Shown here in pieces: positions 1,924 through 57,616 of a DNA stretch of 64,000 bases. The stretch's first letter is position 1, and each line of letters opens with the position of its first letter. Origin of the DNA: Thalia democratica (Eukaryota); the NCBI GenBank assembly GCA_965202585.1, contig OZ241829.1, positions 77,872,001-77,936,000 of the forward strand. The letters are read 5' to 3'. A model generated the notes under the pieces. It worked only from the letters and a program-made list of their open reading frames with translations. It was not told where the DNA came from and made no database searches. The position numbers and the translations under genes were made by a program.

Positions 1924-2895
1924 ATGTCTATGATGTGTAAAATTAATAAGTCAATTCCTTTTCAAGTACCAGCAGTTTTGTACGAAAACAGATATTGTAA
2001 CCAAGAAGGCTTCAGTATATTGATTTGTGGCGGAAAAGACAAAAACGGAAATATGACAAACGAAGTTTTAGAACTGAAAACACCTAGCTTTAAAGTGAAC
2101 AAGTTTCCGTCAATGGTAAAAATGCATTTCTGCTTAGATTTAGTTGCTATTAAATCTGATATACTTGCTATTGGTGATAGAATAAATTTTGATGAAAGTT
2201 CAAATAACTTAGTTGTGTCAACTGAAATTTATTCTGAAAAAACTAAAACTTGGACTCATCAATACATGCAAATGAAAGAACGGTCTTGTTGTTTTATTAT
2301 TTTATTCATGAATAAATTATATTTAATTAGAAGGTGGATTATAAAAAGGGATAAAAGTCTTAGTATGTGTTATACCCTTGATATCAATAGTTATACATGG
2401 AATGAAATAGCGTATTTAAATGTAGCGAGAGATTGTGCTGCTTGTACAGTTTTTGAAGGTAAAATTGTTGTTACTGGAGGTTATAACAATGATCATGGTG
2501 AGTTGAAATCAGTAGAAGCATATGATCATCATGAAAATAAATGGACTTATTTACCTTTAATGATTGAAGAAAGACGCAATCATGCTGCAGTTAGTAGGGG
2601 TAATAAAATGTTTGTTATTGGTGGATATTATAATTCAAATTGTGAAGCATTTGACAGTTATTCGAGAAAATTTACAAAAATTAATTCGGAAATAAAAGTT
2701 TCTAGTATAAAAGGTTGGTATTTTCAAGCATTTAGTATTGGCAGAAACATTGTGGTATTTCAAGATTTTTCAGAATTCCTCACAGAAACAGTTGTTTATT
2801 CATACGATGTTGATAAAGCAAAATGGTCAAATATTCAGTGTGATTTTACTAAAAACCTGTTTCATTCAAATTTTTTGAAGTACTTCTACTATTAG
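1924..2895 (+). CDS. K1: stand-alone six-bladed Kelch beta-propeller protein, 323 aa, intact, no BTB/BACK
   Basis: Uninterrupted ORF with six Kelch blades (FSILICGG, SDILAIG, KLYLIRR, KIVVTGG...SVEAYD...KWTYL, KMFVIGG...CEAFD, NIVVFQ...YD...W) and a C-terminal closing strand (FLKYFY). AAAATG start; acceptor TTTTTAG|AC 21 nt upstream. Confidence 0.9.
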   Translation: MSMMCKINKSIPFQVPAVLYENRYCNQEGFSILICGGKDKNGNMTNEVLELKTPSFKVNKFPSMVKMHFCLDLVAIKSDILAIGDRINFDESSNNLVVSTEIYSEKTKTWTHQYMQMKERSCCFIILFMNKLYLIRRWIIKRDKSLSMCYTLDINSYTWNEIAYLNVARDCAACTVFEGKIVVTGGYNNDHGELKSVEAYDHHENKWTYLPLMIEERRNHAAVSRGNKMFVIGGYYNSNCEAFDSYSRKFTKINSEIKVSSIKGWYFQAFSIGRNIVVFQDFSEFLTETVVYSYDVDKAKWSNIQCDFTKNLFHSNFLKYFYY

Positions 2896-3378
2896 AATCT
2901 ATTTTTACAAGTGTAAAAAATTACGAAGAAAAAATTTGAAGATGGTTTCATTTTGTTTGAGTTCTACTTTGATAGTTATATTTACATTTTAGTTTTAGAT
3001 CACTTTTTAGTTTTTGTGTTAATGATTACAACAAGATAATTTTTGATTGTAATAAAGTTCTAGTTTGTGTTATAATAAAGCATATATACTTAATAGATTA
3101 TTACTAGATCTTAATTGTGTTTGGTGTGTATTGTTGTATTGTTTATGGTGATGTAAACAAATAAAAAAATATGTATAAATATTCAAATATTTTTTATTAC
3201 ATGTTAAAATGTTTTTGTAGAGCATAAGCCAAATTAAGTTTGATTTTGAGGCAAAAAAAAATTGCCTATTATATAAAATTTGTTAAAAAAAGTTTAGTAG
3301 TTAAACTTAAAAAAAATTATTCTGAAGGGAATTTTATTGAGAAAGCTTAAACATAAATACAAAGTGTTTATTTTTATA

Positions 3379-3700
3379 ATGATATGAAAAAAACAAATCA
3401 ATTACTTTTCAAGTACCAACAGTTTTATATAAAAACAGATATTGTGGACAAAAAAGCTTAAGTATTTTAATTTGCGTAATAAAAAACGTTAATTGAATAG
3501 TGTTAAATTTGTGTAGGGAACTAAATAAGTTGATAATTTAAAAACGAAGTTTTAGAATTTGAAATTATTAGCTTCAAACTTAAAAGCTTTATACAAACGG
3601 TAAAACCCCATTACAATTTCTACTTAGCTACCATCAAGTCTGATATACTTGCTATTGGTGATAGAGTAGAATTAAATGAGAGTTGAGATGACATAAAACT
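3379..3700 (+). pseudogene. K1b: degenerate 5' fragment of a Kelch paralog
   Basis: TTTTCAAGTACCAACAGTTTTATATAAAAACAGATATTG and TCTGATATACTTGCTATTGGTGATAGA match the K1 5' region. Multiple indels and stops; truncated. Confidence 0.8.
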
Positions 3701-4229
3701 TAGGATTTTATTATATAAATGAAAAGCTTTATATTGAAATTATTTAAACTAAATTTCAGATTTTAGTTAAAGGGTTCATATTTGTTCATCTCTATTAGTT
3801 GTGTACAATTTATCATTTTTAATGACCCATTTGAGTCTTAAAATTATTGAAAGTTACCACTAATTTATTAGAAGTGGTTTTAGTAAGGTGAGGGGGCGTT
3901 TTTATTTCTTTAGCTTTGAATTAGCTAGTTACGGGGCGATGTTTAATAAACGAGGACATTTTTTTATATGCCAAATTGCGTTAAAAAATAGTTTGCAAAA
4001 CCTAAATAAATTAGTAAAAATAATATATAATAACGTATAAAACCGTAAATTTTTAACATTTACTCACAAAAGCTTAAACAAGCTTTACAAACTTATTATA
4101 AAAACTGGAAAATGAAAGATTAAAAGAATAAAGTTTAACAGAATTTGCCTGTAAGCCAGAACTAGAAGTTGACATCATTATTATATAATTTCAATTAATT
4201 ATAAAAAAAAACATTTTCAAGTTTTTAGA

Positions 4230-5136
4230 CAAAACTTACTATGTTTGCTCTAAAAAAAAAAGTATTTTGATCTTTGGAGAAATAGAAAAAAACGGAACAA
4301 TTACGAACGAAGTCTTATAATTAGAAACTTCTAGTTTTAAAGTGAACAAATTCCCTTCAATGGTAAAACCTCATTTTCGATTCTCTTCAGCTACCATCAA
4401 ATTTAATATTCTAGCTGTTGGTTATAGTAAAGAACTAAATGAGTTTTTAGATGATTCATTTTTATATCTTGAACTTTATTCAGATAAAACTAAATCATGG
4501 ACTCATCAATATCTTCAAATGAATTAAAGGTCTTGTCATTGTTTTAATCCATTCATGGGTAAATTGTATTTAATTGGAGGATTTATTAAAAGAAGTGAAA
4601 AGTATCTTAGTTCGTGTTATACCTATGTTATCAATAGTAATATATGGAATGATATAGCAGTTTTAACCGAAGCAAGATATTGTGCTGCTTGTACACTTTT
4701 TGAAGGTAAAAATGTTACTGGAGGTTATAATAATGATCATAGAGAATTGAAATCAGTAGAAGGATATGATTATTATGAAAAAAAATGGACTTATTTACCT
4801 AATATGATTGAAGAAAGAAGTAATCATGCTGCAGTTAGTATGGGTAATAAAATGTTTGTCATTGGTGGAGAGGAAACAACAAATTGTGAAGTATTTGACA
4901 ATTGTTCGAGAAAGTTCACAAAATTTTTTTCAGAAATTAAAGTTCCTTTTCTACCATTGTGCATTTTTTATGCATTTGACATCGGAAATAATATTGTGGT
5001 GTTCCAAAATTTTAAAGGAAGCTTTGAAGAAACATATATCTACTTATACGACGTTGTAAAAGAAAAATGGTTAAATGTTCAGTGTGATTTTTTTTAAAAT
5101 ATGTTTGATTCAATTTTTGTTAAGTATTACAACTAG
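4230..5136 (+). pseudogene. K2: Kelch paralog pseudogene
   Basis: Acceptor TTTTTAGAC is kept but the start region is deleted. In-frame TAA at 4525, small deletion in KIVVTGG (KNVTGG), frameshift in the poly-T near 5095. ORFs 4342-4527 and 4555-5097 are Kelch-like. Confidence 0.88.
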
Positions 5137-5329
5137 TTATTACAAACCATAGGAAGAGCTGTATATCAATAACAGTAAAAGTTTAGTAAGTTTACTACAT
5201 TTTGTTTGAGTTATACTTTAAAACTACCTTTTTTCATATCTAGTTGAAAAGTTTTTGTTTTTTTAGCTTCACTCAACTTATGTTCATTAAAAAAAGTTGG
5301 AAAAATAAGTATTACATTGTTTAAACAGG

Positions 5330-7130: not shown

Positions 7131-8543
7131 GCAAATGTTATTCTGATTTAATAAATGTTAAAATAATAGTAAAAATATTCAATAGATAATATTTTACGTC
7201 AATGTTTAAAAGTAGGTTTATCTTTTACATATTACCAGGTAGTCAATTTTAATATTCAAGTGTTGATATAACTTATAGTTTTGTTCAAGTCCTTATAATA
7301 ATATTTGAATTAATATTTTAAAGAAAATTTTATAATACAAAGTTGTTGTATTCTACCAATTTTTTGTTAGTATCTCTGAAAACAAATGCTATTTTCTTTT
7401 TTTTTCTCTATTGTTTGTATAGATACTTTAAAGTTTATGCTTAATGTTTATAGTTTAAGTTAAAAAAAGTTTGCTTCATCTTTAAAGTTTAAATTATTAA
7501 AGTTTTGCGTCAAAAAAAAGTTTATATTTCAGATTATTTGACAGAAAACTTAAAAAAAAAACGTTCTTTTTGACAGTTACAACACTAATTTATATAACAA
7601 ATAGGCTTAATTTGCATTAATTTTTTTATACACATTCATAATGAGCAAATTAAAATTATATATAACTATTTACTTAGTTAAATAGCTAGAATTTATGGTT
7701 CATGTCGTCATATATATAAATGTACAGTTATTAAATTTTCGAACACTTTTTAAAATATTGTTTTTTTAAATGAATGAACTGAAAATGATTTCATTAACTT
7801 GACATAAAGACTTTTTTCTGAAAATTGATGTTCAACTTTTATTTATTACAAGATTTTGATTTCTTTTAGTGTGATGTTCGAGTGAAGAACATCCTTAAAT
7901 TTAAGAGTAGTATTTTCAAGAAGTTATTTTGGATGGGCCATTGCATTGAAAAATAAAAATGTTTAGAGAAGCGTTAAAAAGAAAACTGCTTGAAAAATCC
8001 TAGACTTTTTAAGATCAGTTTTTTGTTTAGTTGTCTCAATACTTGTAATGTTTATGTAGTTGGTATTCCTTAAAGCACAAAGTATCGTGTAAATAATTTT
8101 AAAAGTTTAAATAGTACTTGTGTTGTTTGAACTTTTAAATTTTTTGTTAAAGCATTCCATTCATTTTTTTTGTTCATATCATAATAAGCTGAAAGCTGTT
8201 TTGAATTTATCAGTTAAGTTTTACTTATCTGTTAATCTAGCATTGTAAAATTTTTTATTCAATTTTTGAAGTATTATTTTGTATCCAAAATAAATTGACA
8301 GCCCTGTTTCTAAAGTGTATAAACCAGAGGTTAACTGAGAACTAAAAGTAATTTAAAAAAGTTAAAAAGAGCTACAGATAAATTATTTGTGATATTTATT
8401 AAACGAAATAGAACACCATAAAAACAAAATTAAACCTAGTATCACGATAAACATAATAATCTAAAAAACACACAAAACAATATTTTACATATATGATAAA
8501 ATAAACACATGTCTAATACAAAAATAATTAAAATCTTTTAAAG

Positions 8544-11630: not shown

Positions 11631-11809
11631 ATTTATAATTGAGTAGATCATTTTACACATATACTTAACATGTAAACCAACTAAATCTATTTCTTTAACT
11701 ATTAATTCATACTTTACATTAAACACCAATAAAAAGTTTTCGTTTCATTAAAAACTATTAATTTTTATACGAAAGCAAAAAGATGATTGGTTCAATTAAT
11801 GTTTAATAC

Positions 11810-12170
11810 GGAAACGGGTCACTTTTGCACGAGCGTCACTTTTGCACGAAGTCACTTTTGCACAAGGGGACACTTTTGCACGAGGGTCACTTTTGCACGA
11901 AGGGTCACTTTTGCACGAGGAACACTTTTGCACGGCGACTCTTGTCACTTTAGCACGAGGGGACACTTTTGTACGACGTCACTTTTGCACGCAGGGTCAC
12001 TTTTGCACGAGGGGACACTTTTGCACGGCGACTCTTTTGCACGACTGTCACTTTTGCACGAGGGGATACTTTTGCACGGCGACACTTTTGCACGGAGGGT
12101 CACTTTTGCACGGCGACTCTTTTGCACGGAGGGTCACTTTTGCACGAGGTGACACTTTTGCACGGCGACA
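11810..12170 (+). repeat. Left arm: about 20 units of (GT/A)CACTTTTGCACG plus a 2-5 nt spacer
   Basis: Read directly; units about 16-19 bp. Confidence 0.95.
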
Positions 12171-15967: not shown

Positions 15968-16076
15968 TTTTAGATCTTTCATTATTTGCCTTTAATATAG
16001 GTGTATTATAAAATTTTAGTTTTCAGTTTCTTTTTATGTTACAAACTTGGTAATAGCTAAACAACTTTTAATCGGC

Positions 16077-16543
16077 CTGCATGCAAAATTGATTTTTCGT
16101 GCAAAAAATTCATCGTGCCAAAATGTCGCTGTGCAAAAATTTCATCGTAAAAATGTGACGTTGTGCAACAATGCTGGTGTAGAAAATTGTCATCGTAAAA
16201 AAAATTTGCCGTGAAAAAGTGTCTCCTCGTGCAAAAGTGACCCTCCGTACAAAAGAGTCGCCGTGCAAAAGTGTCCTCTCGTGCAAAAGTGACCCTCCGT
16301 GCAAAAGTGACCCTGCGTGCAAAAATGTCCCCTCGTGCAAAAGTGACAGTCGTGCAAAAGAGTCGCCGTGCAAAACTGTCCCCTCGTGCAAAAGTGACCC
16401 TGCGTGCAAAAGTGACGTCGCGCAAAAGAGTCGCCGTGCAAAAGTGTCCCCTCGTGCAAAAGTGACCCTCGTGCAAAAGTGTCCCCTCGTGTAAAAGTGA
16501 CGCTCGTGCAAAAGTGACGCTCGTGCAAAAGTGACACCCACCC
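16077..16543 (-). repeat. Right arm: inverted array of the same unit, degenerating inward
   Basis: CGTGCAAAAGTGAC units; order of spacer variants largely shared with the left arm. Confidence 0.95.
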
Positions 16544-17420
16544 GTTTAATACATATAGTTGTTATATTAGCACACAAACATCAGTCTATTGTAATTTATT
16601 AATAGAAACATGTAGAAAATACTCAGATGCTAATGTTAAACTTATTAATATATTTTCACTGCATATCTTCAAAAACGTTACTGCAGAAAGAATTAAAACA
16701 TCAACTTAAAACACTTAAAACACTTAAAACCACAAAAAATATCTTTATGCTAATTTGTCATTAGAGAATTTAACAAAAGTTGAAAAACAATCATCGCAAA
16801 AACATTTATAAACTAACTATAAAACATGCCATTATAAAAGTTAGTTAATTAAACAAATAAAAACACTTTCTACACAAAATCTTTTTGTCTACAATGTTTC
16901 GGTTTGTTCAAAAACATTATTAGCCTATAAACTCGCTAGGTCATAATAATCTATAACATAATATAGTAAAATTCTTTGTAAAGTTGCTTAAAATAACAGA
17001 CAAAGTAAAACTTGAAGCACAAATGATATGATTTAAAAATTTAACAATTAATTAAGTTTTATTTAATGATATATTTTAACTTTTATCCTGAGCTGAAAAA
17101 ATAATTTGCAATCTTATTTGGATAGGCTAAATTGACTCAGTTAATAAACAACAAAATGATACAGATTTTTAATTATAAGTTTAATAAAGTATCTGCAACA
17201 TAGTTGTTAACATATTAAAATATCATTAAAAGCGTTTTGACAAGTTTGAATTTAGAAGATTCTTATCAAAAATATCAAATAATATTTATTAACAGTTAAT
17301 TTCGACTTGTATTTTTCTACACGAATTGCGTTTTTAAATGATACATTGTATCGTTATGTTTTAAATGTGTCTAGTTTAATTTTAGTTTCTGTTTTTAGAC
17401 AAAAAATTATTTCTGGCAAA

Positions 17421-18389
17421 ATGTCTATGGTGTATGAAAACAGCAATTCAATTTCTTTTCATGTACCGAATGTTTTGTACGAAAACAGATATTGCAACAA
17501 AGAAGGCTTCAGTATCTTAGTTTGTGGAGGAAAAGACAGAAACAAAGATATGACAAACGAAGTTTTAGAGTTGGAGATACCTAGTTTTAAAGTGAATAAA
17601 TTTCCCTCAATGGTTAAACCACATTTATTTTTCGGTTTATCTACTATCAAGTCTGATATATTTGCTATTGGTAATACTAAAAAATTAAAAAAGTTTTTAG
17701 GTGAATCATATCTATTTATAGAAGTTTATTCTCGAAAAACTAAAACTTGGACTCATAAGTATGTCAAAAATGATAAAAAGCTACATAGTATTAATTCATT
17801 TAGTTGTATAAGTTCATTTATGTGTAAGTTGTATTTAATTGGTGATTGGAACAGTAGTTTGTGCTACAGTTACGATATTAATAAGCTTACATGGAACAAA
17901 ATAACTAATTTAAATGCAGCAAGAAGTAGTGCTAGATGTACAGTTTTTGAAGGTAAAATTGTTGTTACTGGAGGCTACTACTATCCACAAGGAGAATTGA
18001 AATCAGTAGAAGCATATGATTATTATGAAAGCAAATGGACCTATTTACCTGATATGATTGAAAAAAGATGTAATCACGCTGCAGTTAGTATGGGTAATAA
18101 AATGTTTGTTATTGGTGGAGGATATACTACAAGTTGTGAAGTTTTTGATAGTTTTTCAAGAAACTTTACAAATATTTGTTCAGAAATTTATCCTGATGAA
18201 GAAAAATGTTGGTTTGATGCATTAAACATTGGGAACTATATAGTAGTGTTTCAAATTTTAGTAAACTATATAAGCGAAACAGTTGTTTACTTGTATGATG
18301 TTGATAAAGCAAAATGGTTAAATGTTCAGTGTGATTTTACTAAAAACAAATTTGACCCCAGATATGTTAAGTACTACACCTTACTTTAA
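17421..18389 (+). CDS. K3: stand-alone Kelch beta-propeller protein, 322 aa, intact
   Basis: Six blades, no stops. ATG homologous to K1; acceptor TTTTTAG|AC (17397-17398) 22 nt upstream. Confidence 0.9.
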   Translation: MSMVYENSNSISFHVPNVLYENRYCNKEGFSILVCGGKDRNKDMTNEVLELEIPSFKVNKFPSMVKPHLFFGLSTIKSDIFAIGNTKKLKKFLGESYLFIEVYSRKTKTWTHKYVKNDKKLHSINSFSCISSFMCKLYLIGDWNSSLCYSYDINKLTWNKITNLNAARSSARCTVFEGKIVVTGGYYYPQGELKSVEAYDYYESKWTYLPDMIEKRCNHAAVSMGNKMFVIGGGYTTSCEVFDSFSRNFTNICSEIYPDEEKCWFDALNIGNYIVVFQILVNYISETVVYLYDVDKAKWLNVQCDFTKNKFDPRYVKYYTLL

Positions 18390-23358: not shown

Positions 23359-24318
23359 ATGTGTCAGATGCATGAAAAAAACAAGTCAATTCCTTTTCAT
23401 GTGCAAAAATATTTGTATGAAAACAGATATTTTAACCAAGAATGCTTCAGTATTTTGATTTGTGGAGGAAAAGACAAAAATAGAAAAATTACAAACGAAG
23501 CTATAGAGTTTGAAATACCTAGAATGAATGTTAATGAATTTCCTTCAATGGTAGAACCGCATTATTATTTTTACTTAGCTACTATTAAATCTGATATTAT
23601 AGCTTTTGGTAATTGTCCAGAACTAAATTGCTTTTTCAATATGTGCCATTTATTTCTTGAAATTTATTCTGGAATAACTAAAACTTGGACATATCATATT
23701 GTTAGAAAGAAAAACGGTATTGTTATTGTGTTAGTTCATTCATGAGTGAATTTTATTTAACAGGAGGGCGGGTTGGATGCAGTGCGAAGTGTTAGTTGGT
23801 CTCACAGATACGACATCAGAAGAAGAATATGGAATGAAGTAGCAGATTTAAATGTAGCAAGAGATTGTGCTAAGTGTACAGTTTTTGATGGTAAAATTGT
23901 TGTTACTGGAAGTATTGAAAGTTAGTCAACATTAAAATCAGTAGAGGTTATGACTATCATGAAAACAAATGGACATTTGTATCTGATATGATCGAAAAAA
24001 ATTGTAATCATGCTGCAGTTAGTATGTGTTATAAAATGTTTGTTATTGGTGGATACTATAATACAAGTTGTGAAGTATTTGATAGTTTATCAAGAAAATT
24101 CACAAAAGTTAACTCAGAAGTTAAAGTTCGTAACTCAGAAAAACAGTACTTTAATGCTTTCAGCATCGGCAATAATATTGTGATATATCAAGGTTTAAAA
24201 AAGTCTCTTACAGAAACAGTTGTTTACTTATACGATGTTGAAAAAAAAAAGGCTAAACACTCACTATGGTTTAACTAAAAGCTTGTTTGATTTAAGTTAT
24301 GTGAAGTACTTTACCTAA
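23359..24318 (+). pseudogene. K4: Kelch paralog pseudogene
   Basis: Full-length homology with frameshifts near 23715 and 23945, TAG near 23922 and a poly-A shift near 24245. Acceptor TTTAG|AC 23 nt upstream. Confidence 0.9.
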
Positions 24319-24379
24319 TTTCATGATCGACTCAAGCTTATGTCGTAGAAAACTTTATTTTTTGAACACAACTTCCTTG

Positions 24380-27836: not shown

Positions 27837-28802
27837 TTAGATAGAGTACTTTACAAAACTTGAACCAAACATGTTTTTAGTAAAACTACACTGAACATTT
27901 ATCCATTTTTCTTTATCAACATCATACAAGTAAACAATTGTTTCGGTCAGATAGCTTTTGAAATTTTGAAATATCACAATGCTATTTCCGATGGTAAATG
28001 CAGAAAAATAGCGTATTATTGAATCAGAAAATTTAATTTCTGAATTAACTTTAGTAAATTGTCTTGAAAAGTTATCAAATACTTCACAAGTTGTAGTATA
28101 TGCTCGACCATTAACAAGCATTTTATTACCCATACTAACTGCGGCATGATAATGTCTTTTTTCAATCATTTCAGGTAAATAAGTCCATTAGTCTTCATGA
28201 TAATCATATGCTTCTACTGATTTCAATTGACACCAACGACCTATACCTCCAGTAACAACAATTTTACCTTCAAAAACTGTACATTCAGCATAGTCTCTTG
28301 CCACATTTAAACTCGCTATATCTTTCCATGAATTACTGTTGATGTCGTAAGTGTAACACGAACAAAGATTTTTATCAATGTTTTTAAACCACGGTCCGAC
28401 TAAATATAATCTACTTAAGAATAAACTAACATAATAACAAGAATATTCATTCATTTGCATATATTGATGAATCCAAGTTGTAGTTTTTTCAGAATAAATT
28501 TCAACAGATACAACTGAATTTATTAACTTTACACTTAACTCTACTCTATCACCAATAGCAAGTATATTAGAATTGATATTAACTAAATCTAAGTAGCTAT
28601 GCGGTTCTACCATTGATGGAAATTTACTCACTTTAAAACTAGGTATTTCCATTTTAAAAACTTCGTTTGTAATTTTTCCATTTTTCCTTCTTCCTCTACA
28701 AACTAAAATACTGAATACTTCTTGTTTACAATACCTGTTTTCATACAAAACTTTCGGTACATGAAAAGGAACTGACTTGCTTTCTTCATGCATCATAGAC
28801 AT
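27837..28802 (-). pseudogene. K5: Kelch paralog, full length, with one in-frame nonsense codon
   Basis: ORFs 28188-28802 and 27837-28169 are in the same frame, joined by HED-TAA-WTYLPEM (paralogs have Lys AAA/AAG). Acceptor GTCAG|AC 22 nt upstream. Confidence 0.88.
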
Positions 28803-38333: not shown

Positions 38334-40059
38334 TAGTGATGTACCGGACTCACTATCCGGGTCCGGGTCCGGCCGGATATTGCCATTTTTGTCTGATATC
38401 GGATCCGGCCGGATTCTAATTTGAAAAAAAAAGTCCGGGTCCGGTTCCGGCTGGATTCTAATTTGAAAAAAATATCCGGATCCGGGTCCGGCCAGACCCG
38501 GATCTAGTTAGTAAAAAAGATCATACTGAAAAGTATTTTTTCAAAAACAAACCAAGTGTAGATTAATAAGAGTCATTTTCGTCAGGTAAAATTAAACACC
38601 TACCATGATTGGCTCATTTTGTACACGTGACTAATTTACATTTGTTTACGTTTTAAACAAGAAATAAACATTTCATGAAATTAACTGTTTACATATGTGG
38701 TAAAATTGAAAACTTTGGAATGAATACTTGCATTATTTATTTTTTAAAGTTGAGAATGCTTAGAGTTAATACGGTTGAATGTACGAGCCAATGAGATTCA
38801 TATGACGAAATGTTTCAAACTAAATACTGTAGCAACAAAACATCAGAACATGACAGGCAATTTATATGTAAGCAGTTAGTTAGTTTGGTGTGTAGCTTCA
38901 AGCAACAAAATATCTTGAACGTTTTTGTGAATGCTTATTGTAAGTAGTGCTTTGTTTAAAAAGTGAATATTTCAACAGGTGTTTAATTGTTTAAACATTT
39001 AAGCCAGGTTTATAGTTTAATAGTTTATTAAAAATTTTACTGTTTCCTGTTTACTAAAAGTTTTATTTAATTTTTAGTTTTTTTTAAGTCTTTTGATATA
39101 GATTTAAATAGCTTCCAGTTTTTAAAGTGTTACCAAAGTAATTAATAATTTTGTATATGCTAGTATTTCTTGTTGTGTTTTATATAAAAGATTCATCACT
39201 CAAAACTGTCGTGTCTGATTATAGAAAGTAGTCTCAGTTAGAATTGAGTATTTGTTAAATATTAATTTAATAAGGTAGGATTTATTTACGATGGGTAGTA
39301 CTAATAAGTTAAGTGTACCACAATCAGTACACAATTTTACTACTAAATTGTCAACCTTTGCTAGCTGTTCTACTGATTATTAGATTTAAATTAAAGTAAT
39401 TTTTTCAGTTTTTAAAAACCTCATTCTGACTCAGGCTTGTTTATACTCACTCTAGCTAGTTTTATTGACTTAAACAGTGGCAACCCTGCTAGTTTGAAAA
39501 TTTTTGGGAACTTTAGAAATTCTTGGACTGCCTCAGGCTAGTGTAGTTTTTTATAAAAACTCAGGCTAGTTTTCCTTCAGATTTTGAATGAGTTTGAGCT
39601 AATCCAGTTATCAATATTTTGTAATTTTCTGGTGTATTTTGTTCAAGAACTTGATTTCAGATTTTCAATTGTAAATAACACCTAAATTTGTAAACCTTGT
39701 GGCTAGCTGTTCTACTTATTATTAGATTAAAATTCTTTTTTTTTCAGTTTTTATAAACCTCATTCTGACTCAGGCTAGTTTATTCTAGTGATGAACCGGA
39801 CTCACTATCCGGGTCCGGGTCCGGCCGGATATTGCCATTTTTGTCTGATATCCGGATCCGGCCGGATTCTAATTTGAAAAAAAAGTCCGGATCCGGTTCC
39901 GGCCGGACTCTAATTTTAAAAAAAAGTCCGGGTCCGGTTCCGGCGGGATTCTAATTTGAAAAAAAAGTCCGGATCCGGTTACGGCCGGATTCTAATTTGA
40001 AAAATAAGTCCGGATCCGGGTCCGGCCGGACCCGAAATTGTGGTTCCGGTACATCACTA
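38334..40059. mobile_element. Composite hAT element (1726 bp) with an extra internal left end at 39786
   Basis: Perfect 15-bp TIR TAGTGATGTACCGGA/TCCGGTACATCACTA. TSD ATTTTGAC/ATTTTGAG (7/8). Subterminal CCGGATCCGG..TCTAATTTGAAAAAAAAGT repeats. Flanks rejoin to match tandem units 1 and 2. Confidence 0.88.
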
Positions 40060-41795: not shown

Positions 41796-41908
41796 GTCAA
41801 AATTACTTGACTTTTTTATTATTAGAATTATTATTCTTATTACCATTTTTTGATCTATTTATTAGTTCGTTTTTTTAAGGGATCTCTTGTTCGAATAATG
41901 ATAACTTT

Positions 41909-41945
41909 TGAGACCGTTTTCGTCCTTATAAGGACTCATCAGTCA
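41909..41945 (-). ncRNA. Minimal type I hammerhead ribozyme motif with canonical core
   Basis: Minus strand TGA-CTGATGA-GTCCT-TATA-AGGAC-GAAA-ACGG-TC-TCA: conserved CUGAUGA and GAAA, 5-bp stem II, 3-bp stem I, GUC site (cleavage predicted between 41912 and 41911). Stem III A-ACGG-U is one base from the palindrome ACCGGU. Confidence 0.8.
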
Positions 41946-43927
41946 GTCACAACCGAAACTTGTGGTCTGATGATCGAATTGTCATGATCAAACCTTCCGT
42001 TAAACTTAAGCTTGTCACGGCAAACGTAAGTCCAAGCTTCTGCTCTGCAGACGCCAATGTTTTTGTTGACCAAATGTATTTATAATTAAGTAGATCTTTT
42101 TACACATATACTTAACATGTAAACCAACTAAATCTATTTCTTTAATTATTAATTCATACTTCACATTAAACAACAATAAAAAGTTTTCGTTTCATTAAAT
42201 CTATTAATTTTTATAAGAAAGCAAAAATTCAAATTAGATGATTGGTTAAATTAATTTTTAATACATTTATTTCTTATATTAGTACACAAACATCATTCTA
42301 TTGTAACTTATTAATCGAAACATGTAAAAAGTACTCAGATGCTATCGTTAAACTTTTTAATCTATTTTCACTGCATATCTTCAAAAACGTTACTGCAGAA
42401 AGAATTAAAACATAGTTTGTCACTAAAAACCACAAATAAAATAATTTTATGCTATTTTGTCCTTAGAGAATTTAACAAAAGTAGAAAAAAATCATCGCAA
42501 AAACATTTTTAAACTAACTATAAAACATGCAATTAAAAAATGTTAGTTAATTAAACAGATAAAAACACTTTATACACAAAATCTTTTTGTTTACATTGTT
42601 TCGGTTTATTAAAAAAAAAAATATTAGCCTATAATCTCGCTAGGTCATATTAATCTATAACATAATATAGTAATGTTTTTTGTAAAATTGCTTAAAATAA
42701 TAGACAAAGTAAAACTTGAAGCACAAATGATATGATTTAAAAATTTAACAATTAATTAAGTTTTATTTAAGGACATGTTTTAACTTTTATCCTGAGCTGA
42801 AAAAATAATGTTCAATCTTATTTTGATAGGCTAAATTGACTCAGTTAATAAATAACAAAATGATACAGATTTTTAATTATAATAAAGTATCTGCAAAATA
42901 GTTGTTAACATATTGAAATATCATTAAAAGCGTTTTGACAAGTTTGATTTTAAATAATTTCAAAAATCAAACAACTAAATTTTTTCAGTTTACCACACTT
43001 TAATATTTTTTTTTCTATTAAATCAGCTAATTGTTCTTTTATTTATAACAATTAATTTTACTTAAAAAATTCCTCATAACTTCTAAATAGATTTTTTGTG
43101 GTAAATCTTATTTTAGAATAAGTCTATTTATTAGATATTTCTAGCTAAAAAATTATTTGTTTATAATAACTACTTTTTAGTCAAATAAAAAAAATACATT
43201 ATATTTTCAATGAGTATTATTTGTATAGTATATTTAACTTTTATTATACTTAAAAATACACAGTACTGTTTTTTTAAATATATTTAGTTTTTGCCTAGAC
43301 TCAATAGTATATATAATAAAACAAATTTTCTAAATGTTTAAACATATAAACTATTACAAAATTTCAATTCAACGAAATACTTATTGAAAATTGTTTAATA
43401 TTAACTAACTGTTAGTTTTAAAATGCATAACTCTAAAATTATCAAACAATTATAAGAACAAAAAACGAGTTTATTAAATTATATTTTTTTTGTAATATAT
43501 TAAGTTATAATAAATCTAATTATTTAGATTTGTAAAACTATTAAATTTAAAGTAATTTATAGCTCATATTAATCAAATGAACAGATAAAAGAAAATTTTC
43601 AATGAGTATCATTTGTTTAGCGTACGTTACTTTTATTTTTCTTAAAGATAAACAATACTGTTTTTCATAGTGTATTTGTTTTCTGTATTAAATTTAAGGG
43701 ATATAAAGAAGAATTTACAATTTTTTAAGATTTAACAAACTGTTTCCAAAGTTCAAATTTATAAGAATCTTATCAAAAGTATAAAATAATATTTATTAAC
43801 AGCTAATTTTGACTTGTATTTTTCAAAACGAATTGTGTTTTTAAGTGATACACTATATCGTTATGTTTTAAATGTGTCCAGTTTAATTTTAGTTTCTGTT
43901 TTTAGACAAAAAATTATTTCTGGCAAA

Positions 43928-44751
43928 ATGTCTATGATGCATGAAAACAGCAACTTAATTCCTTTTCAAGCACCAAATGTTTTGTACGGTAATAGAAATT
44001 GCAACCAAGAAGGCTTTAGTATTTTGATTTGTGGAGGAAAAGATAAAATAGAAAAAATTACAAACGAAATTTTAGAAATGGAAATTCCTAGTTTTAAAGT
44101 GAATACATTTTCTTTAATGGTAGAACCACATGTAATTTTCGATTTAATTAATATCAAATCTGATATACTTGCTATTGGTGAAACTAAAAAATTAAAAGAG
44201 TTTTTAGATGAACCATATCTGTTTCTAGAAGTTTATTCTGCAAAAACTAAAACTTGGACTCATAAGTATGTCAAAGTTGATAAAAAGCTACACAGTATGT
44301 TTATTTGTATAAGTTCATTTATGAGTAAGTTGTATTTTATTGGTGGTTGGAACAGTAATTTGTGCTATAGTTACGATATTAATAAATTTGAATGGAACAA
44401 AATAACTAGTTTAAATGCAGCAAGAAGTAGTGCTAAATGTATAGCTTTTGAAGGTAAAATTGTTCTTACTGGAGGGCATAACTATGATCAAGGAGAATTG
44501 AAATCAGTAGAAGCATATGACTATCATGAAGACAAGTGGACTTATTTACCTGATATGATTGAAAAAAAATTAATCATTCTGCATTTAGCATTGATAACAA
44601 TATTTTGGTTTTTAAAACTTTGAAATATTATTTAACAGAAACAATAGTTTACTTATACGATGTTGATAAAGCAAAATGGTTAAATATTCAGTTTGATTTT
44701 ACTAAACACATGCTTAGACCAGATTATGTTAAGTACTACACCTTACATTAA
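43928..44751 (+). pseudogene. K6: Kelch paralog of K3 with a -1 frameshift and deletion of one blade
   Basis: Open to MIEKK, 1-nt loss near 44570, then AAT CAT TCT GCA TTT AGC joins blade 5 to blade 6 (46 codons missing vs K3). The rest is open to KYYTLH*. Confidence 0.88.
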
Positions 44752-49960: not shown

Positions 49961-50915
49961 CTAAGTGTAGTACTTAACAAAATTAGATTGAAAAATATAT
50001 TCAGTAAAATCTCTGTGAATGTACAACCACTTTTCTTTTATAACATCGTATAAGTAAACAACAGTTTCTGTGTAAGTTTCGTGAAATACAACAATATTTT
50101 TGCCAATACTAACTGAATTAAAGTTCATTTTTTGGAAATCTGGTAAAATATCTGAAGTAATTTTTGTGAAAATTCGGGAACTACTATCAAATACTTCACA
50201 ATTTGTAGTTTTGTATCCACCAACAACAAACATTTTGTTACCCATACTAACTGCAGCATGATTACTTCTTTCTTCAATCATATCAGGTAAAAAATTTCTA
50301 TTTGTTTTCATGATAATCATATGCCTCTACTGATTTCAGTTGAGACCAATTATTTTCACCTGCAGTAACAACAATATTACCTTCAAAAACTGTACAGGCA
50401 GCACAATCTCTTGCTTCATTTAAATCTGCTATTTTATTCCATATATTACTATTGATATCATAGGTATAACATGAACCAAGAGTTTTATCACTGCATATAT
50501 ATATACACAAATTAAATACAGTTTATTCATAAACGAAGTAATACAATAACAAGATTTATCTTTCATTTCCACATACTGATGATTCCATGTTTTAGTTTTT
50601 CTTGAGAAAATTTCAACAGATAAAAATGAATCATCTAAACTTTCATTTAATTTTGTTGTGTTATCAATAGCAATTACATCAGACTTAATAGTAATTAAGT
50701 CCAAGTAGTAATACGGTTTTACCATTGAAGGAAATTTGTTCACTTTAAAACTAGGTTTTTTTTCTTTCTAAAACTTCTTTTGTCATATATCCATCTTCAT
50801 CTGCTCTTCCACAAATCAAAATACTGAAGCCTTCTTGGTTACAATATCTGTTTTCATACAAAACATTTGGTACTTGAAAAGGATTTGAGTTGCTTTTCTC
50901 ATGCATCATAGACAT
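49961..50915 (-). pseudogene. K7: Kelch paralog pseudogene
   Basis: Full-length homology. Frameshifts near 50760, at a (TA)n tract near 50500 and near 50295; TGG changed to TAG at 50298. Acceptor TTTTTAG|AC 21 nt upstream. Confidence 0.9.
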
Positions 50916-52888
50916 TTCTCAAAAGATTAAAACAGTCTAAAAATAAGAAAACAATTAAGGTGGACAAATTTTAAAAAACAAAATGTAAAATTTTTTAGTA
51001 GAAAATAAAGAGATTTAAGAACAAATAATCAGTGGACAAAATCAGTATAGAATATTTAAAATAATGATAAGAATATACTAAGTACAAGTTATAATTAGCT
51101 TCTAAATATTAAGTACTTTATGTATTTGACTAAAATATGGTTAACAATTGTTATGTTTTAACCTTGAAAAGTTTAAATCGCTCTTGAAATAGTTTAAAAG
51201 CTTCATAAAAATAATTTCTAAATAAAATTGTTGAACTAGAAAGTAATAAAAGACATCATGCATAATAAATAATACTGAATGAAAGTATAAGTTAAACTAT
51301 CTATTTAACTAATTAGTAAATATTAGTTACTCCTAGTTCATAAGCTTTAAAAATTAAGATATAATAAGTGTTAAAACCAATTAATCTATTTCTAAATTTT
51401 AAACGAACTTATATCAGTAATAGCATATAGTATATTAAACCAAAAAGAACTTTACTCAAAAACAACAATCATTAAATTTTTAAATTTGGTATCTTTAAAG
51501 AATTGCTATGTTTATTTATTATAATATTGTTAAAACTTAAATTAAGTTGTTAAAACTCTTAGATTTAAAATGTAGCTATTTAGTTATGAACCCAAATAAT
51601 TAACTTTCTTTTTTGTGAAGTAAAAAAACTATATTTATTACTAAATAATTTTTGTCAGCTAGATTTTTCAAAAATAAACTTTTTCAGCTATCTTATACTT
51701 TATTTGTTAATCTGTTTTATATTATCAATTATTAATCAGTATACTATTAATTTCTAAAACAGTATAAACGTGAGACAGTCCAAAACTTTATACTAACTTT
51801 CAATGTATTGGTATGAATTACCAAAGTAGAACTTTCTTTTTTTCGCTTTTCAAACCAATTAAAAAATTTATCTTTTAGTACAACCACCTCTTTAAGATAA
51901 TGTTAAATACTTAAAAAATATCATACGAGATACCATATAAGGTTATTTTTGTCATTAGTAAACCAACAAGCTCAATTAGAGAAATGTATTTGTTAAGTAA
52001 TTAATTAATGTAATATTTTTGAATGTGTACTGAAGTATTTGTAAAGAAGTTGTTATACAAATCATTACTGTATTGTTAAAAACAGTAACTAACTAAATCT
52101 TTAAGTTATCACTTTTAACTAATAAAGATCTTATTTCAATTTGTTTAAGTGATTTATATATTTGTTGAAAAAATACACGTTTTTTAGTTTAAATTAGTTA
52201 AAACTTTAAAGAATACTGAACTATAATAATAAACTAACTTTATAATATATGTATCATCATTGGTCATTTTAACTATTGTGAACTTAGTTGAATAATTTCA
52301 TTTACTAAAAAGAAATCGTTTCAAATATACAGAACTAAAAAATTAATGATTATTGATTTTCCAAAAAACTAAATAAATAATTATTTTGTTTTAATTAATT
52401 TTACAGTTCAAATTATTTAAATCAATTAACACTTACTAAATAAATTTATTTCAATATTTAATACTGGTGATAGTCTTTATATTCAAATTTTTAAGGTTAC
52501 AAGTTAATATAAAACTTTACTTATTTTTTAGTCAACTAAACAACTTAACTTATATTCACAGTGTTTAAAACCTATTCTTTTTTCTTCAAGATAATTCACA
52601 CTTTTTTGAAGTCTTCATGATTTTTATTAAATTCAAAAATGTTTGAAGATAATTTTTTAGGTTCCAACACAACATTTGTTTCTACTAATCTAATTATTCA
52701 CAACTTTAATGAAATATAATAAAATATATAATTTTCTCTAACAATATTGTTATTTTTAGCTTGCGTATTTTTTTAATAAATGCTTATTAGAAAATTAAGT
52801 TAAACATATTTTTTTAATAAAATTTTATTTAAAATTTATCAAATTTTATTACAGTTTTTGTTTTTAGACTCACTTCTTCTCTTGCAAA

Positions 52889-53854
52889 GTGTCTATGATG
52901 TGTGAAAATAAAAAGTCAATTTATTTTCAAGTACCAAAAGTTTTATACGAAAACAGATATTGTAACCAAGAAGGCTTCAGTATTTTGATTTGTGGCAGAA
53001 AAAACAAAAATGGAAATACGACAAACGAAGTTTTAGAACTAAAAATACCTAGTTTTAAAGTGAACAAGTTTCCTTCAATGGTAAAAACGCATCTCTGCTT
53101 AGATTTAGTTAATATTAAATCTGATATACTTGCTGTTGGAGATAGAGTACATTTAGATGAAAGTTTAGATAACTCAGTCGTGTCAAATGAAATTTATTCT
53201 GAAAAAACTAAAACATGGACTCATCAATACATGCAAATGAAAGAACGGTCTTGTGATTGTATTATTTCATTCATGAATAAACTATATTTAATCAGAGGTT
53301 GGATTGTAAAAAGTGATAAAAGTCTTAGTTCGTGTTATACCTTTGATATCAATGGTAATGTATGGAATGAAATAGCGTATTTAAGTGAAGCAAGAAATTT
53401 AGCTGCATGTACAGTTTTTCAAGGTAAACTTGTTGTTACTGGAGGTGAAAATAATTGTTCTCAATTGAAATCAGTAGAAGCATATGATCATCATGAAAAT
53501 AAATGGATATATTTACCTGATTTGATTGAAGAAAGATTTTTTCATACTGCAGTTAGCATGGGTAATAAAATGTTTGTTATTGGTGGAAATTTTACTACAA
53601 GCTGTGAAGTATTTGATAGTTGTTTAAGAAAGTTTACAAAAATTAGATCAGAAATTAAACTTTCTGATTGGGAAATATGCCAGTTTTCTGCATTTAGCAT
53701 CGGAAATAGCATTGTGGTATTTCAAAATTTCGATAGTTATCTGACAGAAACAATTATTTACTTGTATGATGTTGATAAAGAAAAATGGTTAAACGTTCAG
53801 TGTGATTTTACTAAAAACATGTCAGATTCACATTTTGTAAAGTATTACACTTAA
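52889..53854 (+). CDS. K8: stand-alone Kelch beta-propeller protein, intact (first ATG changed to GTG; likely start ATG at 52895)
   Basis: Six blades, no stops; closest to K1. GTG TCT ATG ATG. Acceptor at 52866-52867. Confidence 0.88.
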   Translation: MSMMCENKKSIYFQVPKVLYENRYCNQEGFSILICGRKNKNGNTTNEVLELKIPSFKVNKFPSMVKTHLCLDLVNIKSDILAVGDRVHLDESLDNSVVSNEIYSEKTKTWTHQYMQMKERSCDCIISFMNKLYLIRGWIVKSDKSLSSCYTFDINGNVWNEIAYLSEARNLAACTVFQGKLVVTGGENNCSQLKSVEAYDHHENKWIYLPDLIEERFFHTAVSMGNKMFVIGGNFTTSCEVFDSCLRKFTKIRSEIKLSDWEICQFSAFSIGNSIVVFQNFDSYLTETIIYLYDVDKEKWLNVQCDFTKNMSDSHFVKYYT

Positions 53855-56662
53855 TTGTCAGAAACTATAGAAACACGTTTAATAAAGTAATAATTAAAGC
53901 TATTTTTATTTTGTTTGATATAAACTTTAAACAATTTTCGTGACTATTTTTTCGATTTTAGCTTTAGTTGACTTAGTTTCTTTTATTTTACTGAAGATTA
54001 GTTTATTAAAAAACATTAAGTTTTGTTTTAATAAAGCATATTTTATAAAAGTGTGATTAGTTTATATTAACTTTATAGTTGGTTCTCAGAGCAATAATTT
54101 ATAATTTGGTAAATGTTAGCTTATCAAATTAATTTTTGATAATGATTTATTAAAAGTATATTTAGATGTAAATACAACTCAAACCAAATGAAGTTTGTGG
54201 TAAAAGAAATTTTCCATAAAAAAAACTAAAATGTTTTTGGAATGAATTTTAAGCTACAAAAATTTTCGAGGCCTATAGTTAGATAGATTGTTACTTAGTT
54301 TTAACTTCACATGTAGGATTTAAACTTAATACCAATTATTTAGTCGTAAGTTTTTAACATTGACTAAAATACTTATGTCATAATACATACAGTTACGATA
54401 TTTTTAAAATTTTTTAATTTACAACTTTTTTTTATCACTTTCATTGTAGGAAAAGTGAAATTCCAGCATCAATGGTGCTACAGAAAATTATATTTAAAAA
54501 AATAGTTTTTATTTCTTCTACTTCGATTTCATAAAGTGCACTTTTCAATCTTTCAGTCTTTTTATATATCGTTAATTTGTCGTAGTCATTTACTAGCACC
54601 CTCATTTTATCATGACATCTGTAAGAAATTCAGAGCTCAAAAAATATAACAAAGTATAGTAAATATTTTTAAATTTTTATTGAGTCACATTTTACCAATT
54701 TTTTTGACTATTTTATTTTTAGATAATTTAATTTCACTTACATTTATAAACTACCATTTTGTTTTTAAATAAGCCTGTTAGTTTAAGAATATATAAAAAA
54801 TATTATCAGATACTAGCTTGTTATTTTAGTATTCAAAGAGTTTTATCGAGTAATTTAGTAGTTATTTGGTAATGTAAATAATATAAGTTTCTCATAGATT
54901 ATTGTTTTATTAATAGTATTATTAAAAGTTATTTTAATTTTTTTAAATTCAACTTAAACTAAATAATACTTGTAGTAAATGATATAATATTGTAACGTAA
55001 AAGTTTCGTCTTTAAACCTAAAATTTTAAAGAAATCAATCAGAAAAATAAAGACTTTTGATTTGTTTTTAAATATGTATGATAAAACCCTTAAGGATAGT
55101 CTATTTAAGTCTGCTTAAAACATCAATAGACAAATTCTTATAAAAGCATAAAAAAAAAGAATACATTACAGTCCACTATTAAGCTTGTCACAACTAAATG
55201 TGTTTAAATTTAGTCTAATACATATCCGAAAAACTTGAACACTTAAAAATTACTTTCAGAAACACCATTAAAGTCAATTCTTTCATTATGTAAGATAAGT
55301 TTTAAGTATTTAAACGTATCTTTTTTTAGCTCAAAAAATAATAACGAACTAATAACTATTTAAATGATTTGAATCACCCTAAAACATTTTTGAATATTAT
55401 TTTGACTTGGTCTTCAGGAATGGAATTTAAAGTATTAAAAAATTTTCAAAAGTTTCGTTTCTAATAAGGATTGAAAATAAAAAAGATCTGAACTGAAAAG
55501 GTTCCTTGTAATATAATAAAAATAAGTTGCAAATTAATAAATAAATTAAATACTTTGCAAAACGTTGTGAGTGTTTACGTAATATTATTTTTTATTCAGA
55601 TATTTAATATAAATATTAAGTACTTGGTTACTTGTAAATTTAAAGCTAATTAAAAAGAAAGTATTACGATATCTATTTATTAAATTAATTAATATTTCAA
55701 TACAAGTTAGACAATAACAAAAACTATTTATTGTTTAATTGAAATTTAAACTTAAATAAACAAAACACGTTACAAAAATTGTTTAAACTTTGCGGTATAC
55801 TAAAATCATAAAACATACTCAAATAAATAGTTAATAACCACTAAATTTATTTTCTATCAGTAAATTAAAACTTTCTAACTACTGTACTGAAGGTAAACCA
55901 AAACGTAGCTAAGTTAGTATTAACTTTTATCTTTTGTTTACGTATTTTAAGCAAATCTGAAGTAGATATAAAGTTCTGTATCAAAAGTAATATCAAAATA
56001 AAAGTCAAATAGCACTTAATGGTTTTTAATTGTTACATATTTAATTTTGCTTAAGTATTTTTTCCAAAACACTGATCTAAAAAATTAAAATTTAATTGCA
56101 TACATCAATAAAACAATGCCTTATGGAGTTTATGAAAGTACTTTTATAATTTTAAAACAGTTAGGTTTGTTATAATTCAATAGGTGTATTTAGTTTGTAA
56201 ACTTTTACATTTACTTTCTGAAATTTTTACTTTTTACGTAGTACATTTGGTTTATGTTGTATTAAGAAAAAATTAAGAATTCTTTTTATCATGCTATAAA
56301 ATATTCTAATAAGAAACTAATGTTAGTTATGTCATACATTACTTTATCCAATACAATTATTTGCAATAACTTGAGATTAACAATAATTAAGTATTATATT
56401 ACGAAGTTCTAACAAGTTAACTTTTAATGACATTTTTTCTTTACTTTTGCTTTATTGTAACAAAGACTCAAATGTAGTTAATAACATAAGTTTTGTTTAA
56501 TAAATAGGAAACGATATAATTAAACTTAATATTGTCAGTAAAACAAATAAGTATACTCAATTAAACGAATACGGTGTCAAAGTTTAACTCAAATGAAATA
56601 AAACAAACTTTACTAAATTTAATTTGACAGTGTTGTACGCACGTTTCATTATTTTCTCACAG

Positions 56663-57616
56663 TTAGACATAGTATTTAACAAAATTTAATTCGAACCTAT
56701 CTTCAGTAAAATCACACTTAACATTCAGCCATTTTTCTTTTTCAACATCGTATAAGTAAACAAGTGTTTCTTGTTGAAAGTATTTCTTAAGTCTTTGAAA
56801 CACCACAATATTGTTTCCGATGCTAAATGCAGTAAAACAGAAATGATAACGAGACGGTTTTATTTCTGAAGCAATTTTTGTAAACTTTCTTGAAAAACTA
56901 TCAAATATCTCATAATTTGTATTTTTAAAACCACCAATGACAAACAATTTGTTACCCATACTAACTGCCGCATGATGACTTCTTTTTTCGATCATATCAG
57001 GTAAATATGTCCATTTGTTTTCATGATAATCATATACTTCTACTGATTTTACTGTCGACCAAATATTAACACCTCCAGTAACAACAATTTTACCTTCAAA
57101 GACTGTACATCTACCACAATCTCTTGCTATATTTAAATTTGCTACTTTGTTCCATGTATCACTATTGATATCATAGGCATAACATAAACTAAAACTTTCA
57201 TCACTGCTTTCTCCGATCAAATACAATTTACTCATGAATGAACAAACACAATAGCAAACATTTGTTTCAATTTTTATATACTTATAAGTCCATATTTTCT
57301 TTTTATCAGAATAAATTTCAAGAAATAGAAATGGCTCATTTGAATCATCGAATTCTTCACTACTACCAACACCAAATATATCAGATTTGATATTAACTAA
57401 ATTTAAGTAGCAATGCGGTTCTACCATATGAGGAAATATGTTTACTGTAAAACTAGGTATTTCCATTTCAAAAACATCGTTTGTAAATTTTTCATTTTTG
57501 TCTTCTCCTCCACAAGCCAAAACACTGAAGCCTTTTTGGTTACAATATCTGTTTTCATACAAAACTTTTTGTACTTGAAAAGGAATTGAGTTGCTTTTTT
57601 TATACATCGTAGACAT
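56663..57616 (-). CDS. K9: stand-alone Kelch beta-propeller protein, 317 aa, intact
   Basis: Six blades, no stops. In-frame TAA immediately before the ATG. Family acceptor mutated (TTTTTAA|AC); alternative TTTTCCAG| lies 4 nt upstream of the ATG. Confidence 0.9.
   Translation of the reverse strand: MSTMYKKSNSIPFQVQKVLYENRYCNQKGFSVLACGGEDKNEKFTNDVFEMEIPSFTVNIFPHMVEPHCYLNLVNIKSDIFGVGSSEEFDDSNEPFLFLEIYSDKKKIWTYKYIKIETNVCYCVCSFMSKLYLIGESSDESFSLCYAYDINSDTWNKVANLNIARDCGRCTVFEGKIVVTGGVNIWSTVKSVEVYDYHENKWTYLPDMIEKRSHHAAVSMGNKLFVIGGFKNTNYEIFDSFSRKFTKIASEIKPSRYHFCFTAFSIGNNIVVFQRLKKYFQQETLVYLYDVEKEKWLNVKCDFTEDRFELNFVKYYV

Follow-up and report, generated by a model that had tools for sequence, protein, structure and literature searches.

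We analysed a stretch of 64,000 nucleotides from the genome of the tunicate Thalia democratica (assembly GCA_965202585.1, 801.8 Mb; contig OZ241829.1, here called C5, positions 77,872,001 to 77,936,000), which we refer to as the window. It holds ten copies of one family of open reading frames (ORFs) of ~320 amino acids (aa) that encode a Kelch propeller. We consider it rather probable that these copies are part of a lineage-specific tandem array of intron-free, Kelch-only propeller genes that constitutes a germline-diversified recognition repertoire, its upper face being turned towards changing ligands.

The ten copies were located with tblastn, using the intact copies as queries, and lie on both strands of DNA that is eukaryotic and has a base composition of 25% GC (Table 1; copies are named here by the coordinate of their 5' end). 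Four are intact, with open ORFs of 323, 322, 321 and 317 aa, one carries a single stop, four are pseudogenes and one is a fragment. A preliminary description of the window had arrived at the same number and the same division, which tblastn and inspection of the translations both reproduced. The loop strings it had quoted (after VTGG, in ARxxAx, after VIGG, and RR or RG in blade 3) are all readable in the ORF translations. In the 52889 copy the usual first ATG is GTG, and ATG ATG follows at codons 3 and 4, giving a protein of 319 aa from 52895.

All four intact proteins match the Pfam family PF01344 with 67–75 bits (cut-off 20.1; best E 3.5e-21). PF24681 scores 77.7–119.9 bits in three of them and 56.5 bits in the fourth (cut-off 50; best E 1e-34). 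Pfam detected no domain besides Kelch in these proteins, that is, no BTB, BACK, F-box, SOCS/BC box or other adaptor. An AlphaFold2 (AF2) model of the 52889 copy, built from an alignment of 78 sequences, is a closed propeller with 24 strands in six blades (predicted local distance difference test, pLDDT, 85.9; predicted template modelling score, pTM, 0.85). Blade 1 of the model takes strands B–D from the N-terminal part and strand A from the C-terminal strand, residues 313–318. Judged by sequence, the solved structures that match best are designed Kelch proteins together with the Kelch domains of KLHL3, IVNS1ABP, KLHL2, KLHL12, KLHL17, KLHL20 and Keap1; a Foldseek search with the model returned the Kelch domains of KLHL20, KLHL17, KLHL12, KLHL3 and Keap1 at a template modelling (TM) score of ~0.8, normalised to the target. 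Only 27 residues precede blade 1, and residues 1–20 are predicted to be disordered. The N-terminus is not hydrophobic, which suggests a soluble cytosolic protein. On this model, each intact ORF is predicted to be a complete six-blade propeller of the KLHL type and nothing else.

Growth of the array and selection on the propeller faces

A six-frame search of the whole assembly gave 5775 first-look candidates, among them at least 124 near-full-length matches to the family (E < 1e-115). About 110 of these 124 lie in one cluster at C5:77.25–79.25 Mb, and the remainder are on small unplaced contigs, plus one on C10. No internal stop is present in 80 of the 124 scored copies; stops interrupt the other 44. 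Identity to the 52889 copy ranges from 97% (three near-twins) down to ~60%, and recent duplicates are 96–97% identical. The flanks of the 43928 pseudogene are 86–88% identical to the block around the 17421 copy.

Between older copies, homology comprises the ORF and ~60–100 bp on each side, with no flanking terminal repeats, and younger pairs have segmental blocks of 2–3 kb in common. From this pattern we conclude that segmental duplication, and neither retroposition nor transposition, enlarged the array. Unique flanks of the array are covered at ~2% divergence by contigs from independent runs, which carry two organism labels, and by marine metagenome contigs, so that the array is real and not an assembly artefact. 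The matching contigs are short unitigs whose depths add up to very high values in the conserved Kelch blocks.

When the gene was divided into thirds, each third preferred its own tree over the whole-gene tree by 190–420 log-likelihood units (lnL), which shows that gene conversion or recombination is rampant. The array thus expands by segmental duplication, is homogenised in patches by gene conversion and sheds members through stops and frameshifts. The preliminary description had proposed a birth-and-death family; the tandem cluster of 2 Mb, the recent duplicates and the many broken copies bear this out, and gene conversion has to be added to the picture.

In KLHL proteins, the BC and DA loops give shape to the substrate pocket on the Kelch domain's upper face, and Cul3 binding requires the BTB domain plus the 3-box (PMC3597819). 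We aligned the codons of 54 distinct intact copies and took the loop classes from the strands of the AF2 model. An extracted sequence, L092, that had been read in the wrong frame was excluded. The BC and DA loops were assigned to the upper face and the AB and CD loops to the lower face, an assignment that holds because the meander topology guarantees it.

Pairwise ratios of nonsynonymous to synonymous substitution (dN/dS, omega), calculated by the Nei–Gojobori method (NG86), were 0.34–0.45 for strands, 0.44–0.76 for bottom loops and 0.79–1.20 for top loops, and reached 1.49 for BC loops among the youngest pairs. In 14 independent sister pairs, omega was ~1.23 for top loops, 0.65 for strands (below 1, P = 0.0006) and 0.60 for bottom loops. 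The difference between top loops and strands was significant (P = 0.001), and that between top and bottom loops was marginal (P = 0.064). Estimates per class in IQ-TREE were 0.50 for top loops, 0.28 for bottom loops, 0.39 for strands and 0.82 for the N-terminal tail; their absolute values depend on codon frequencies taken from a small number of sites and are possibly early estimates from the log, and the order of the top, strand and bottom values is consistent with the other methods. The beta-strand scaffold is clearly under purifying selection, and it is this constraint alone that speaks for the proteins being made and used.

We then fitted the codon mixtures M1a and M2a in our own implementation (fixed topology, F3x4, marginal likelihood only). 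On a single tree, the likelihood ratio test (LRT) of M2a against M1a gave 122.7, with 7.6% of codons at omega 2.6. Thirteen of the 17 sites with P > 0.9 were in BC or DA loops and none was in an AB or CD loop. Because of recombination and of the positive outcome in control classes (see below), this single-tree result is not relied on alone. On segment-specific trees the LRT was 35.5, 12.2 and 38.2, and 14 sites had P > 0.9: nine in BC or DA loops, two at adjoining strand edges, three in the disordered N-terminal tail and none in AB or CD loops. With the top-loop codons alone, the LRT was 30.8 and concerned 13% of sites.

The BC loops of blades 4, 5 and 6 contain selected positions, as do the DA loops 1-2, 4-5, 5-6 and 6-1; a further one is the residue that immediately follows the BC loop of blade 1. 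Tyr, Trp and Phe are frequent among the alternative residues at these positions. In sum, ~10–17 BC and DA positions in blades 4, 5, 6 and 1 evolve at an omega of about 1 to 3. The placing of the variable loops on the ligand face, which the preliminary description had put forward, agrees with these data: dN/dS of the top BC and DA loops is about twice that of bottom loops and strands, and sites with omega above 1 occur almost only in or beside BC and DA loops.

Several results weigh against a selected repertoire and would fit an array that is recently amplified, redundant or decaying, with top loops that are merely unconstrained (omega ~1) and apparent omega > 1 sites that stem artefactually from gene conversion, misalignment of loops or multi-nucleotide changes. 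Six of the ten window copies are broken, as are the 44 copies with stops among the best 124 of the genome. At the level of the class, omega of the top loops is between 0.5 and 1.2 and never significantly above 1: in the sister pairs the excess over 1 had P = 0.08, and the maximum likelihood (ML) value of the whole class is only ~0.5. The topology conflict between the gene thirds is strong, and with recombination this rampant, site-model tests can be inflated. M2a was also favoured in the control classes: strand-only codons gave an LRT of 22.0 with 2.8% of sites, and bottom loops taken together with the N-terminal tail gave 15.9. When sites identified in the smaller of two disjoint clades were evaluated in the larger clade, omega was 1.04 and not above 1. 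Searches of sequencing runs for the Kelch genes matched DNA-like runs only; no RNA run among those searched matched, and hence no expression match was obtained.

Other results are difficult to reconcile with decay. Purifying selection clearly acts on strands and bottom loops (omega 0.35–0.65, P < 0.001), and ORFs of 320 codons have stayed open at a dS of ~0.5 in DNA of 25% GC, in which ~9% of random codons are stops. In this cross-validation of the two clades, the cleanest of our tests, sites identified in the larger clade reached omega 3.19 in the other, disjoint clade (p = 0.0026 against omega = 1), compared with 0.5–0.69 for the remaining top-loop sites and 0.35 for all other sites. Positions 188 and 302 recur in both clades, and so do the neighbours 232/233, 258/259 and 261/262. 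The ~320-aa architecture, moreover, is retained down to 33% identity. We therefore regard decay as unlikely. The codon site models on the predicted structure, an analysis proposed in the preliminary description, show an enrichment of omega > 1 sites on BC and DA loops that recurs in one direction of the comparison between clades, but the control classes are positive as well and recombination confounds the test. The ligand face is at least unconstrained, and diversifying selection probably acts at discrete positions.

A propeller separated from BTB and BACK

We searched the window by tblastn with BTB-BACK-Kelch ORFs from the same genome (E <= 10) and found no BTB or BACK; the best match outside the Kelch part had E 0.15. 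Residue 2 of the ORF starting at 52895 aligns to residue 171 of P0081, a BACK-Kelch protein of 479 aa from a TARA marine metagenome, just past the BACK domain. In its BACK-Kelch relatives, the counterpart of the ORF is the final ~310 residues, beginning within the BACK-Kelch linker.

The proteins would then be soluble, cytosolic binding modules whose BC/DA pocket grips changing ligands, as in KLHL proteins. As the BTB domain and the 3-box are missing, they would be unable to dimerise or to recruit CUL3 by themselves. They may act by sequestering, masking or competing for the bound partner, or by handing it over to a further partner. The array as a whole would be a germline-diversified recognition repertoire, for which viral, transposon, microbial or self molecules are candidate ligands; its role may lie in immunity, in the control of transposons or viruses, or in some form of self-recognition.

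It is also conceivable, and in our view improbable, that the propellers still serve as substrate receptors of a ubiquitin ligase by another route, for example by docking of the segment VLYENRYCNQEGF to a BTB/BACK partner or to another ligase, and that their ligands are degraded. This segment precedes blade 1, is not part of any blade of the model and ranks with the best-conserved stretches of the protein, with an entropy of ~0 (L17, Y18, N20, R21, Y22, C23 and Q25 are nearly invariant). Thousands of BACK-Kelch and BTB-Kelch candidates in the genome offer possible partners. The segment could serve for docking, yet it is homologous to the linker that BACK-Kelch proteins ordinarily have, and it may do no more than pack on the propeller. 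Moreover, Pfam detected no F-box, SOCS/BC box or other adaptor domain, and an F-box would not fit into the N-terminal tail of 27 residues. The ORF ends 1–2 residues past the closing strand, which leaves no room for a C-terminal BC/Cul2 box like that of KLHDC2.

Across the 54 copies, the most conserved non-coding element is a nearly invariant TTTTTAG ~22 nt upstream of the ATG. The 16-mer of the Ciona-type spliced leader (SL) followed by GT has 358 exact matches in the genome, compared with none for the reversed control. These matches are partly arranged in regular arrays (on C26 every ~15 kb; on C4 at 80.16–80.42 Mb) and are presumably SL RNA genes. Cellulose synthase (PF03552), looked for as a tunicate marker exon by exon with a model of the plant/bacterial type, gave no hit; it is the SL count that provides positive evidence of a tunicate. 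With this number of SL donor sites in the genome, the conserved acceptor is best read as a spliced-leader trans-splice site, which from its sequence it probably is. Kelch-only mRNAs would receive the leader there and would then be translated. A search for SL-fused retrocopies of Kelch mRNAs, which would prove the trans-splice site, found none. The acceptor of the 57616 copy is mutated, and the CCAG close to its ATG is a possible shift of the acceptor site.

A conserved polypyrimidine-AG acceptor ahead of the ATGs would also be expected if the ORFs were 3' exons of ordinary BTB-BACK-Kelch genes, cis-spliced to distant upstream exons. We consider this very improbable. In several intact copies (L021, L023, L080, L084, L063 and the 57616 copy of the window, in which TAA immediately precedes the ATG) in-frame stops lie between TTTTTAG and ATG, and the spacing between acceptor and ATG differs among copies by non-multiples of three. 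Hence no upstream coding exon could be joined at the acceptor. In addition, 64 kb that hold ten copies in both orientations contain no BTB or BACK, and a Ciona-type spliced leader explains the acceptor. The description of these propellers as BTB-less and stand-alone, given in the preliminary description, is therefore upheld by the missing BTB and BACK, by the stops between acceptor and ATG, and by an ORF that is predicted to fold alone into a closed propeller.

In a FastTree phylogeny of Kelch domains, the Kelch-only copies of the genome and TARA proteins of 300–330 aa form one clade with a local support of 0.997, which is separate from the BACK-Kelch ORFs of the genome. The TARA sequences nest among the subfamilies of the genome. 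The clade spans proteins down to 33% identity with the same ~320-aa architecture throughout. Its placement in the tree indicates that the loss of the N-terminal ~170 residues is old, and the maintenance of the architecture at such divergence argues against simple decay. The idea that the proteins are decoys, also part of the preliminary description, is weakened by these findings, as the clade is old, is ~33% identical to the BACK-Kelch genes of the genome and mimics no current adaptor. A profile search of 5.8 billion proteins gave 208 matches at E <= 1e-15; the best 120 of them are all from marine metagenome assemblies, and none of these 120 is from an annotated proteome.

BACK-Kelch genes are themselves massively amplified throughout the genome, with 2640 first-look BACK candidates, of which all 150 that were scored had E < 3e-20. 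The scored candidates are mostly intron-free BACK-Kelch ORFs of 470–500 aa in large arrays, e.g. at C1:114.5–116.3 Mb, C1:89.0–89.4 Mb and C4:78.5–79.3 Mb. The genome has 134 BTB matches, many within ORFs of 480–610 aa. In the 470-aa BACK-Kelch ORFs a short N-terminal part resembles the last BTB helices, so that a shortened or diverged BTB may be present in these ORFs.

Kelch families occur in poxviruses and giant viruses. That a mobile element carried the copies, or that they derive from a giant virus, and that they were amplified selfishly, is nevertheless hardly credible, for although the region is AT-rich and full of repeats, with retroelement remains and inverted satellite arrays, the homology of older copies ends ~60–100 bp past the ORF without terminal repeats, younger pairs are plain segmental blocks, and the copies are confined to one 2 Mb cluster and a few unplaced contigs. 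A viral origin was rejected, as no relative was found in 2.9 million viral contigs.

Other elements of the window and the cluster

Besides the Kelch copies, the window contains an orphan ORF of 525 aa with a hydrophobic stretch near its likely true start (MFLGFTGLSVVVGASHYF), a middle part rich in Lys, Asn and Ser, and a C-terminal third that looks helical. Pfam gives only a sub-threshold match to IFT20, and a protein atlas search gave no match. The family of this ORF is co-amplified at C5 77.2–79.1 Mb, with ~17 copies that are all on the minus strand and ~110 kb apart. The copies are 81–95% identical and many have stops; a few distant copies are on C4. Their spacing suggests additional duplications of a large unit.

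Two inverted arrays of a 17–18-bp repeat (GGGTCACTTTTGCACGAG) are separated by ~4 kb. Their appearance is that of subterminal repeats belonging to a large DNA element, and they generate odd HFCTRVTFAR 'ORFs' in the ORF list. Towards the end of the window, a decayed pol gene of an LTR-type retroelement is left in interrupted frames, with matches to RVT_1, an RNase H-like domain, an integrase zinc-binding domain and the rve core; its GC content is 32–38%, compared with 25% in the surroundings. No Rfam family reached its gathering score anywhere in the window. A sub-threshold match to the Hammerhead ribozyme HH9 scored 23.8 bits (gathering score 52; E 0.0014 in a 501-nt search). A GC-rich tandem repeat of 41 bp (4.4 copies, 90% matches) is situated within a GC-richer stretch at 38–40 kb.

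Table 1. Kelch copies, acceptor-like motifs and other elements, in window coordinates
Feature	Position	Strand	Evidence
Acceptor-like motif TTTTTAG, 21 nt upstream of the first copy's ATG	1896..1902	+	Alignment
Intact Kelch-only gene, 323 aa, with RR instead of GG in blade 3	1924..2895	+	ORF, Pfam Kelch, tblastn (tblastn extent 1924-2886)
Fragment copy, residues 6-95 (~100 codons), frameshift and one stop	3386..3692	+	tblastn
Pseudogene, 5'-truncated (first ~30 codons absent), three in-frame stops	4261..5130	+	tblastn
Orphan ORF, 525 aa	8544-10121	-	
Repeat array, 17-18-bp unit	11816-12164		
Repeat array, 17-18-bp unit, inverted relative to the preceding one	16208-16535		
Acceptor-like motif TTTTTAG of the 17421 copy	17392..17398	+	Sequence
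Intact Kelch-only gene, 322 aa	17421..18389	+	ORF, Pfam, tblastn (tblastn extent 17421-18380)
Pseudogene, three stops and a frameshift	23368..24275	+	tblastn
Full-length copy (L022), one in-frame TAA after codon 204	27846..28802	-	tblastn, genome search
Tandem repeat, 41-bp unit	39850-40030		
Hammerhead ribozyme HH9, sub-threshold match	41879-41957	-	Rfam
Pseudogene, deletion of ~45 codons and a frameshift	43928..44742	+	tblastn
Pseudogene, several frameshifts and four stops	49964..50915	-	tblastn
Acceptor-like motif TTTTTAG of the 52889 copy	52861..52867	+	Sequence
Intact Kelch-only gene, blade-3 GG replaced by RG; copy used for the structure model	52889..53854	+	ORF, Pfam, tblastn (tblastn extent 52889-53851)
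Intact Kelch-only gene, 317 aa	56663..57616	-	ORF, Pfam (tblastn extent 57616-56669)
Acceptor of the 57616 copy, mutated to TTTTTAA; CCAG 5 nt before the ATG	57640-57646	-	Sequence
Retroelement pol remains, LTR type	60951-63945	-	

Comparison with known systems and significance

Kelch propellers have been described almost only as the part of CUL3 adaptors that grips the substrate; such adaptors are encoded by a few dozen conserved genes per animal. With such KLHL adaptors (KLHL12, KLHL20, KLHL3, KLHL17 and Keap1) the window family shares a six-blade propeller closed by the C-terminal strand in blade 1, the motifs GG, Y, W and R, and variable BC and DA loops on the face that forms the substrate pocket in solved structures. 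It differs from them in lacking BTB, 3-box and BACK, and with these the known route to dimerisation and CUL3, and in consisting of hundreds of intron-free genes in one tandem array. The BACK-Kelch ORFs of 470–500 aa from the same genome and from TARA, such as P0081, are homologous to the family over the propeller and the linker at 33% identity and are likewise intron-free and massively amplified, whereas in the Kelch-only proteins, which group in a separate clade, the N-terminal ~170 residues are absent.

The KLHDC family resembles the window family in having a Kelch propeller without BTB. KLHDC2, KLHDC3 and KLHDC10 have a C-terminal BC/Cul2 box and are single-copy, conserved genes. The window proteins, in contrast, end right after the last strand and are of the KLHL type by sequence.

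Nematode F-box and MATH-BTB genes, grass MATH-BTB genes and plant F-box-Kelch genes are expanded, positively selected families of substrate adaptors with tandem birth-and-death evolution and with selection focused on the substrate-binding domain, and they are interpreted as conflict-driven recognition (PMC8120010, PMC4091423). Families of this kind are reportedly also treated by Thomas in Genome Research in 2006. The window family has the tandem birth-and-death expansion in common with these families, but they keep a cullin-recruiting F-box or BTB, a domain that the window family has lost.

Propeller-only Kelch proteins and positively selected expansions of adaptors are thus already known. In full-text searches we found no description of Kelch-only or BACK-Kelch expansions in tunicates or marine animals. 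As far as literature and database searches reach, an amplified repertoire of ligase-less, KLHL-type propellers with face-specific diversification is undescribed.

It is possible, though we put it forward tentatively, that a chordate relative without adaptive immunity keeps hundreds of germline-encoded, cytosolic, stand-alone propellers whose ligand face is positively selected and shuffled by gene conversion, and that these form a novel class of factors for intracellular recognition or restriction that only bind and are freed from the CUL3 machinery from which they descend. The fastest evolution in the family is exactly at the face with which KLHL proteins contact their substrates, in a genome that also has thousands of BACK-Kelch candidates. 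If the Kelch-only genes are expressed, they would be a natural experiment on what a ligase receptor does without its ligase, be it sequestration, masking or competition. They would then also be candidates for a recognition family of a new, diversified kind in tunicates, the invertebrates most closely related to vertebrates.

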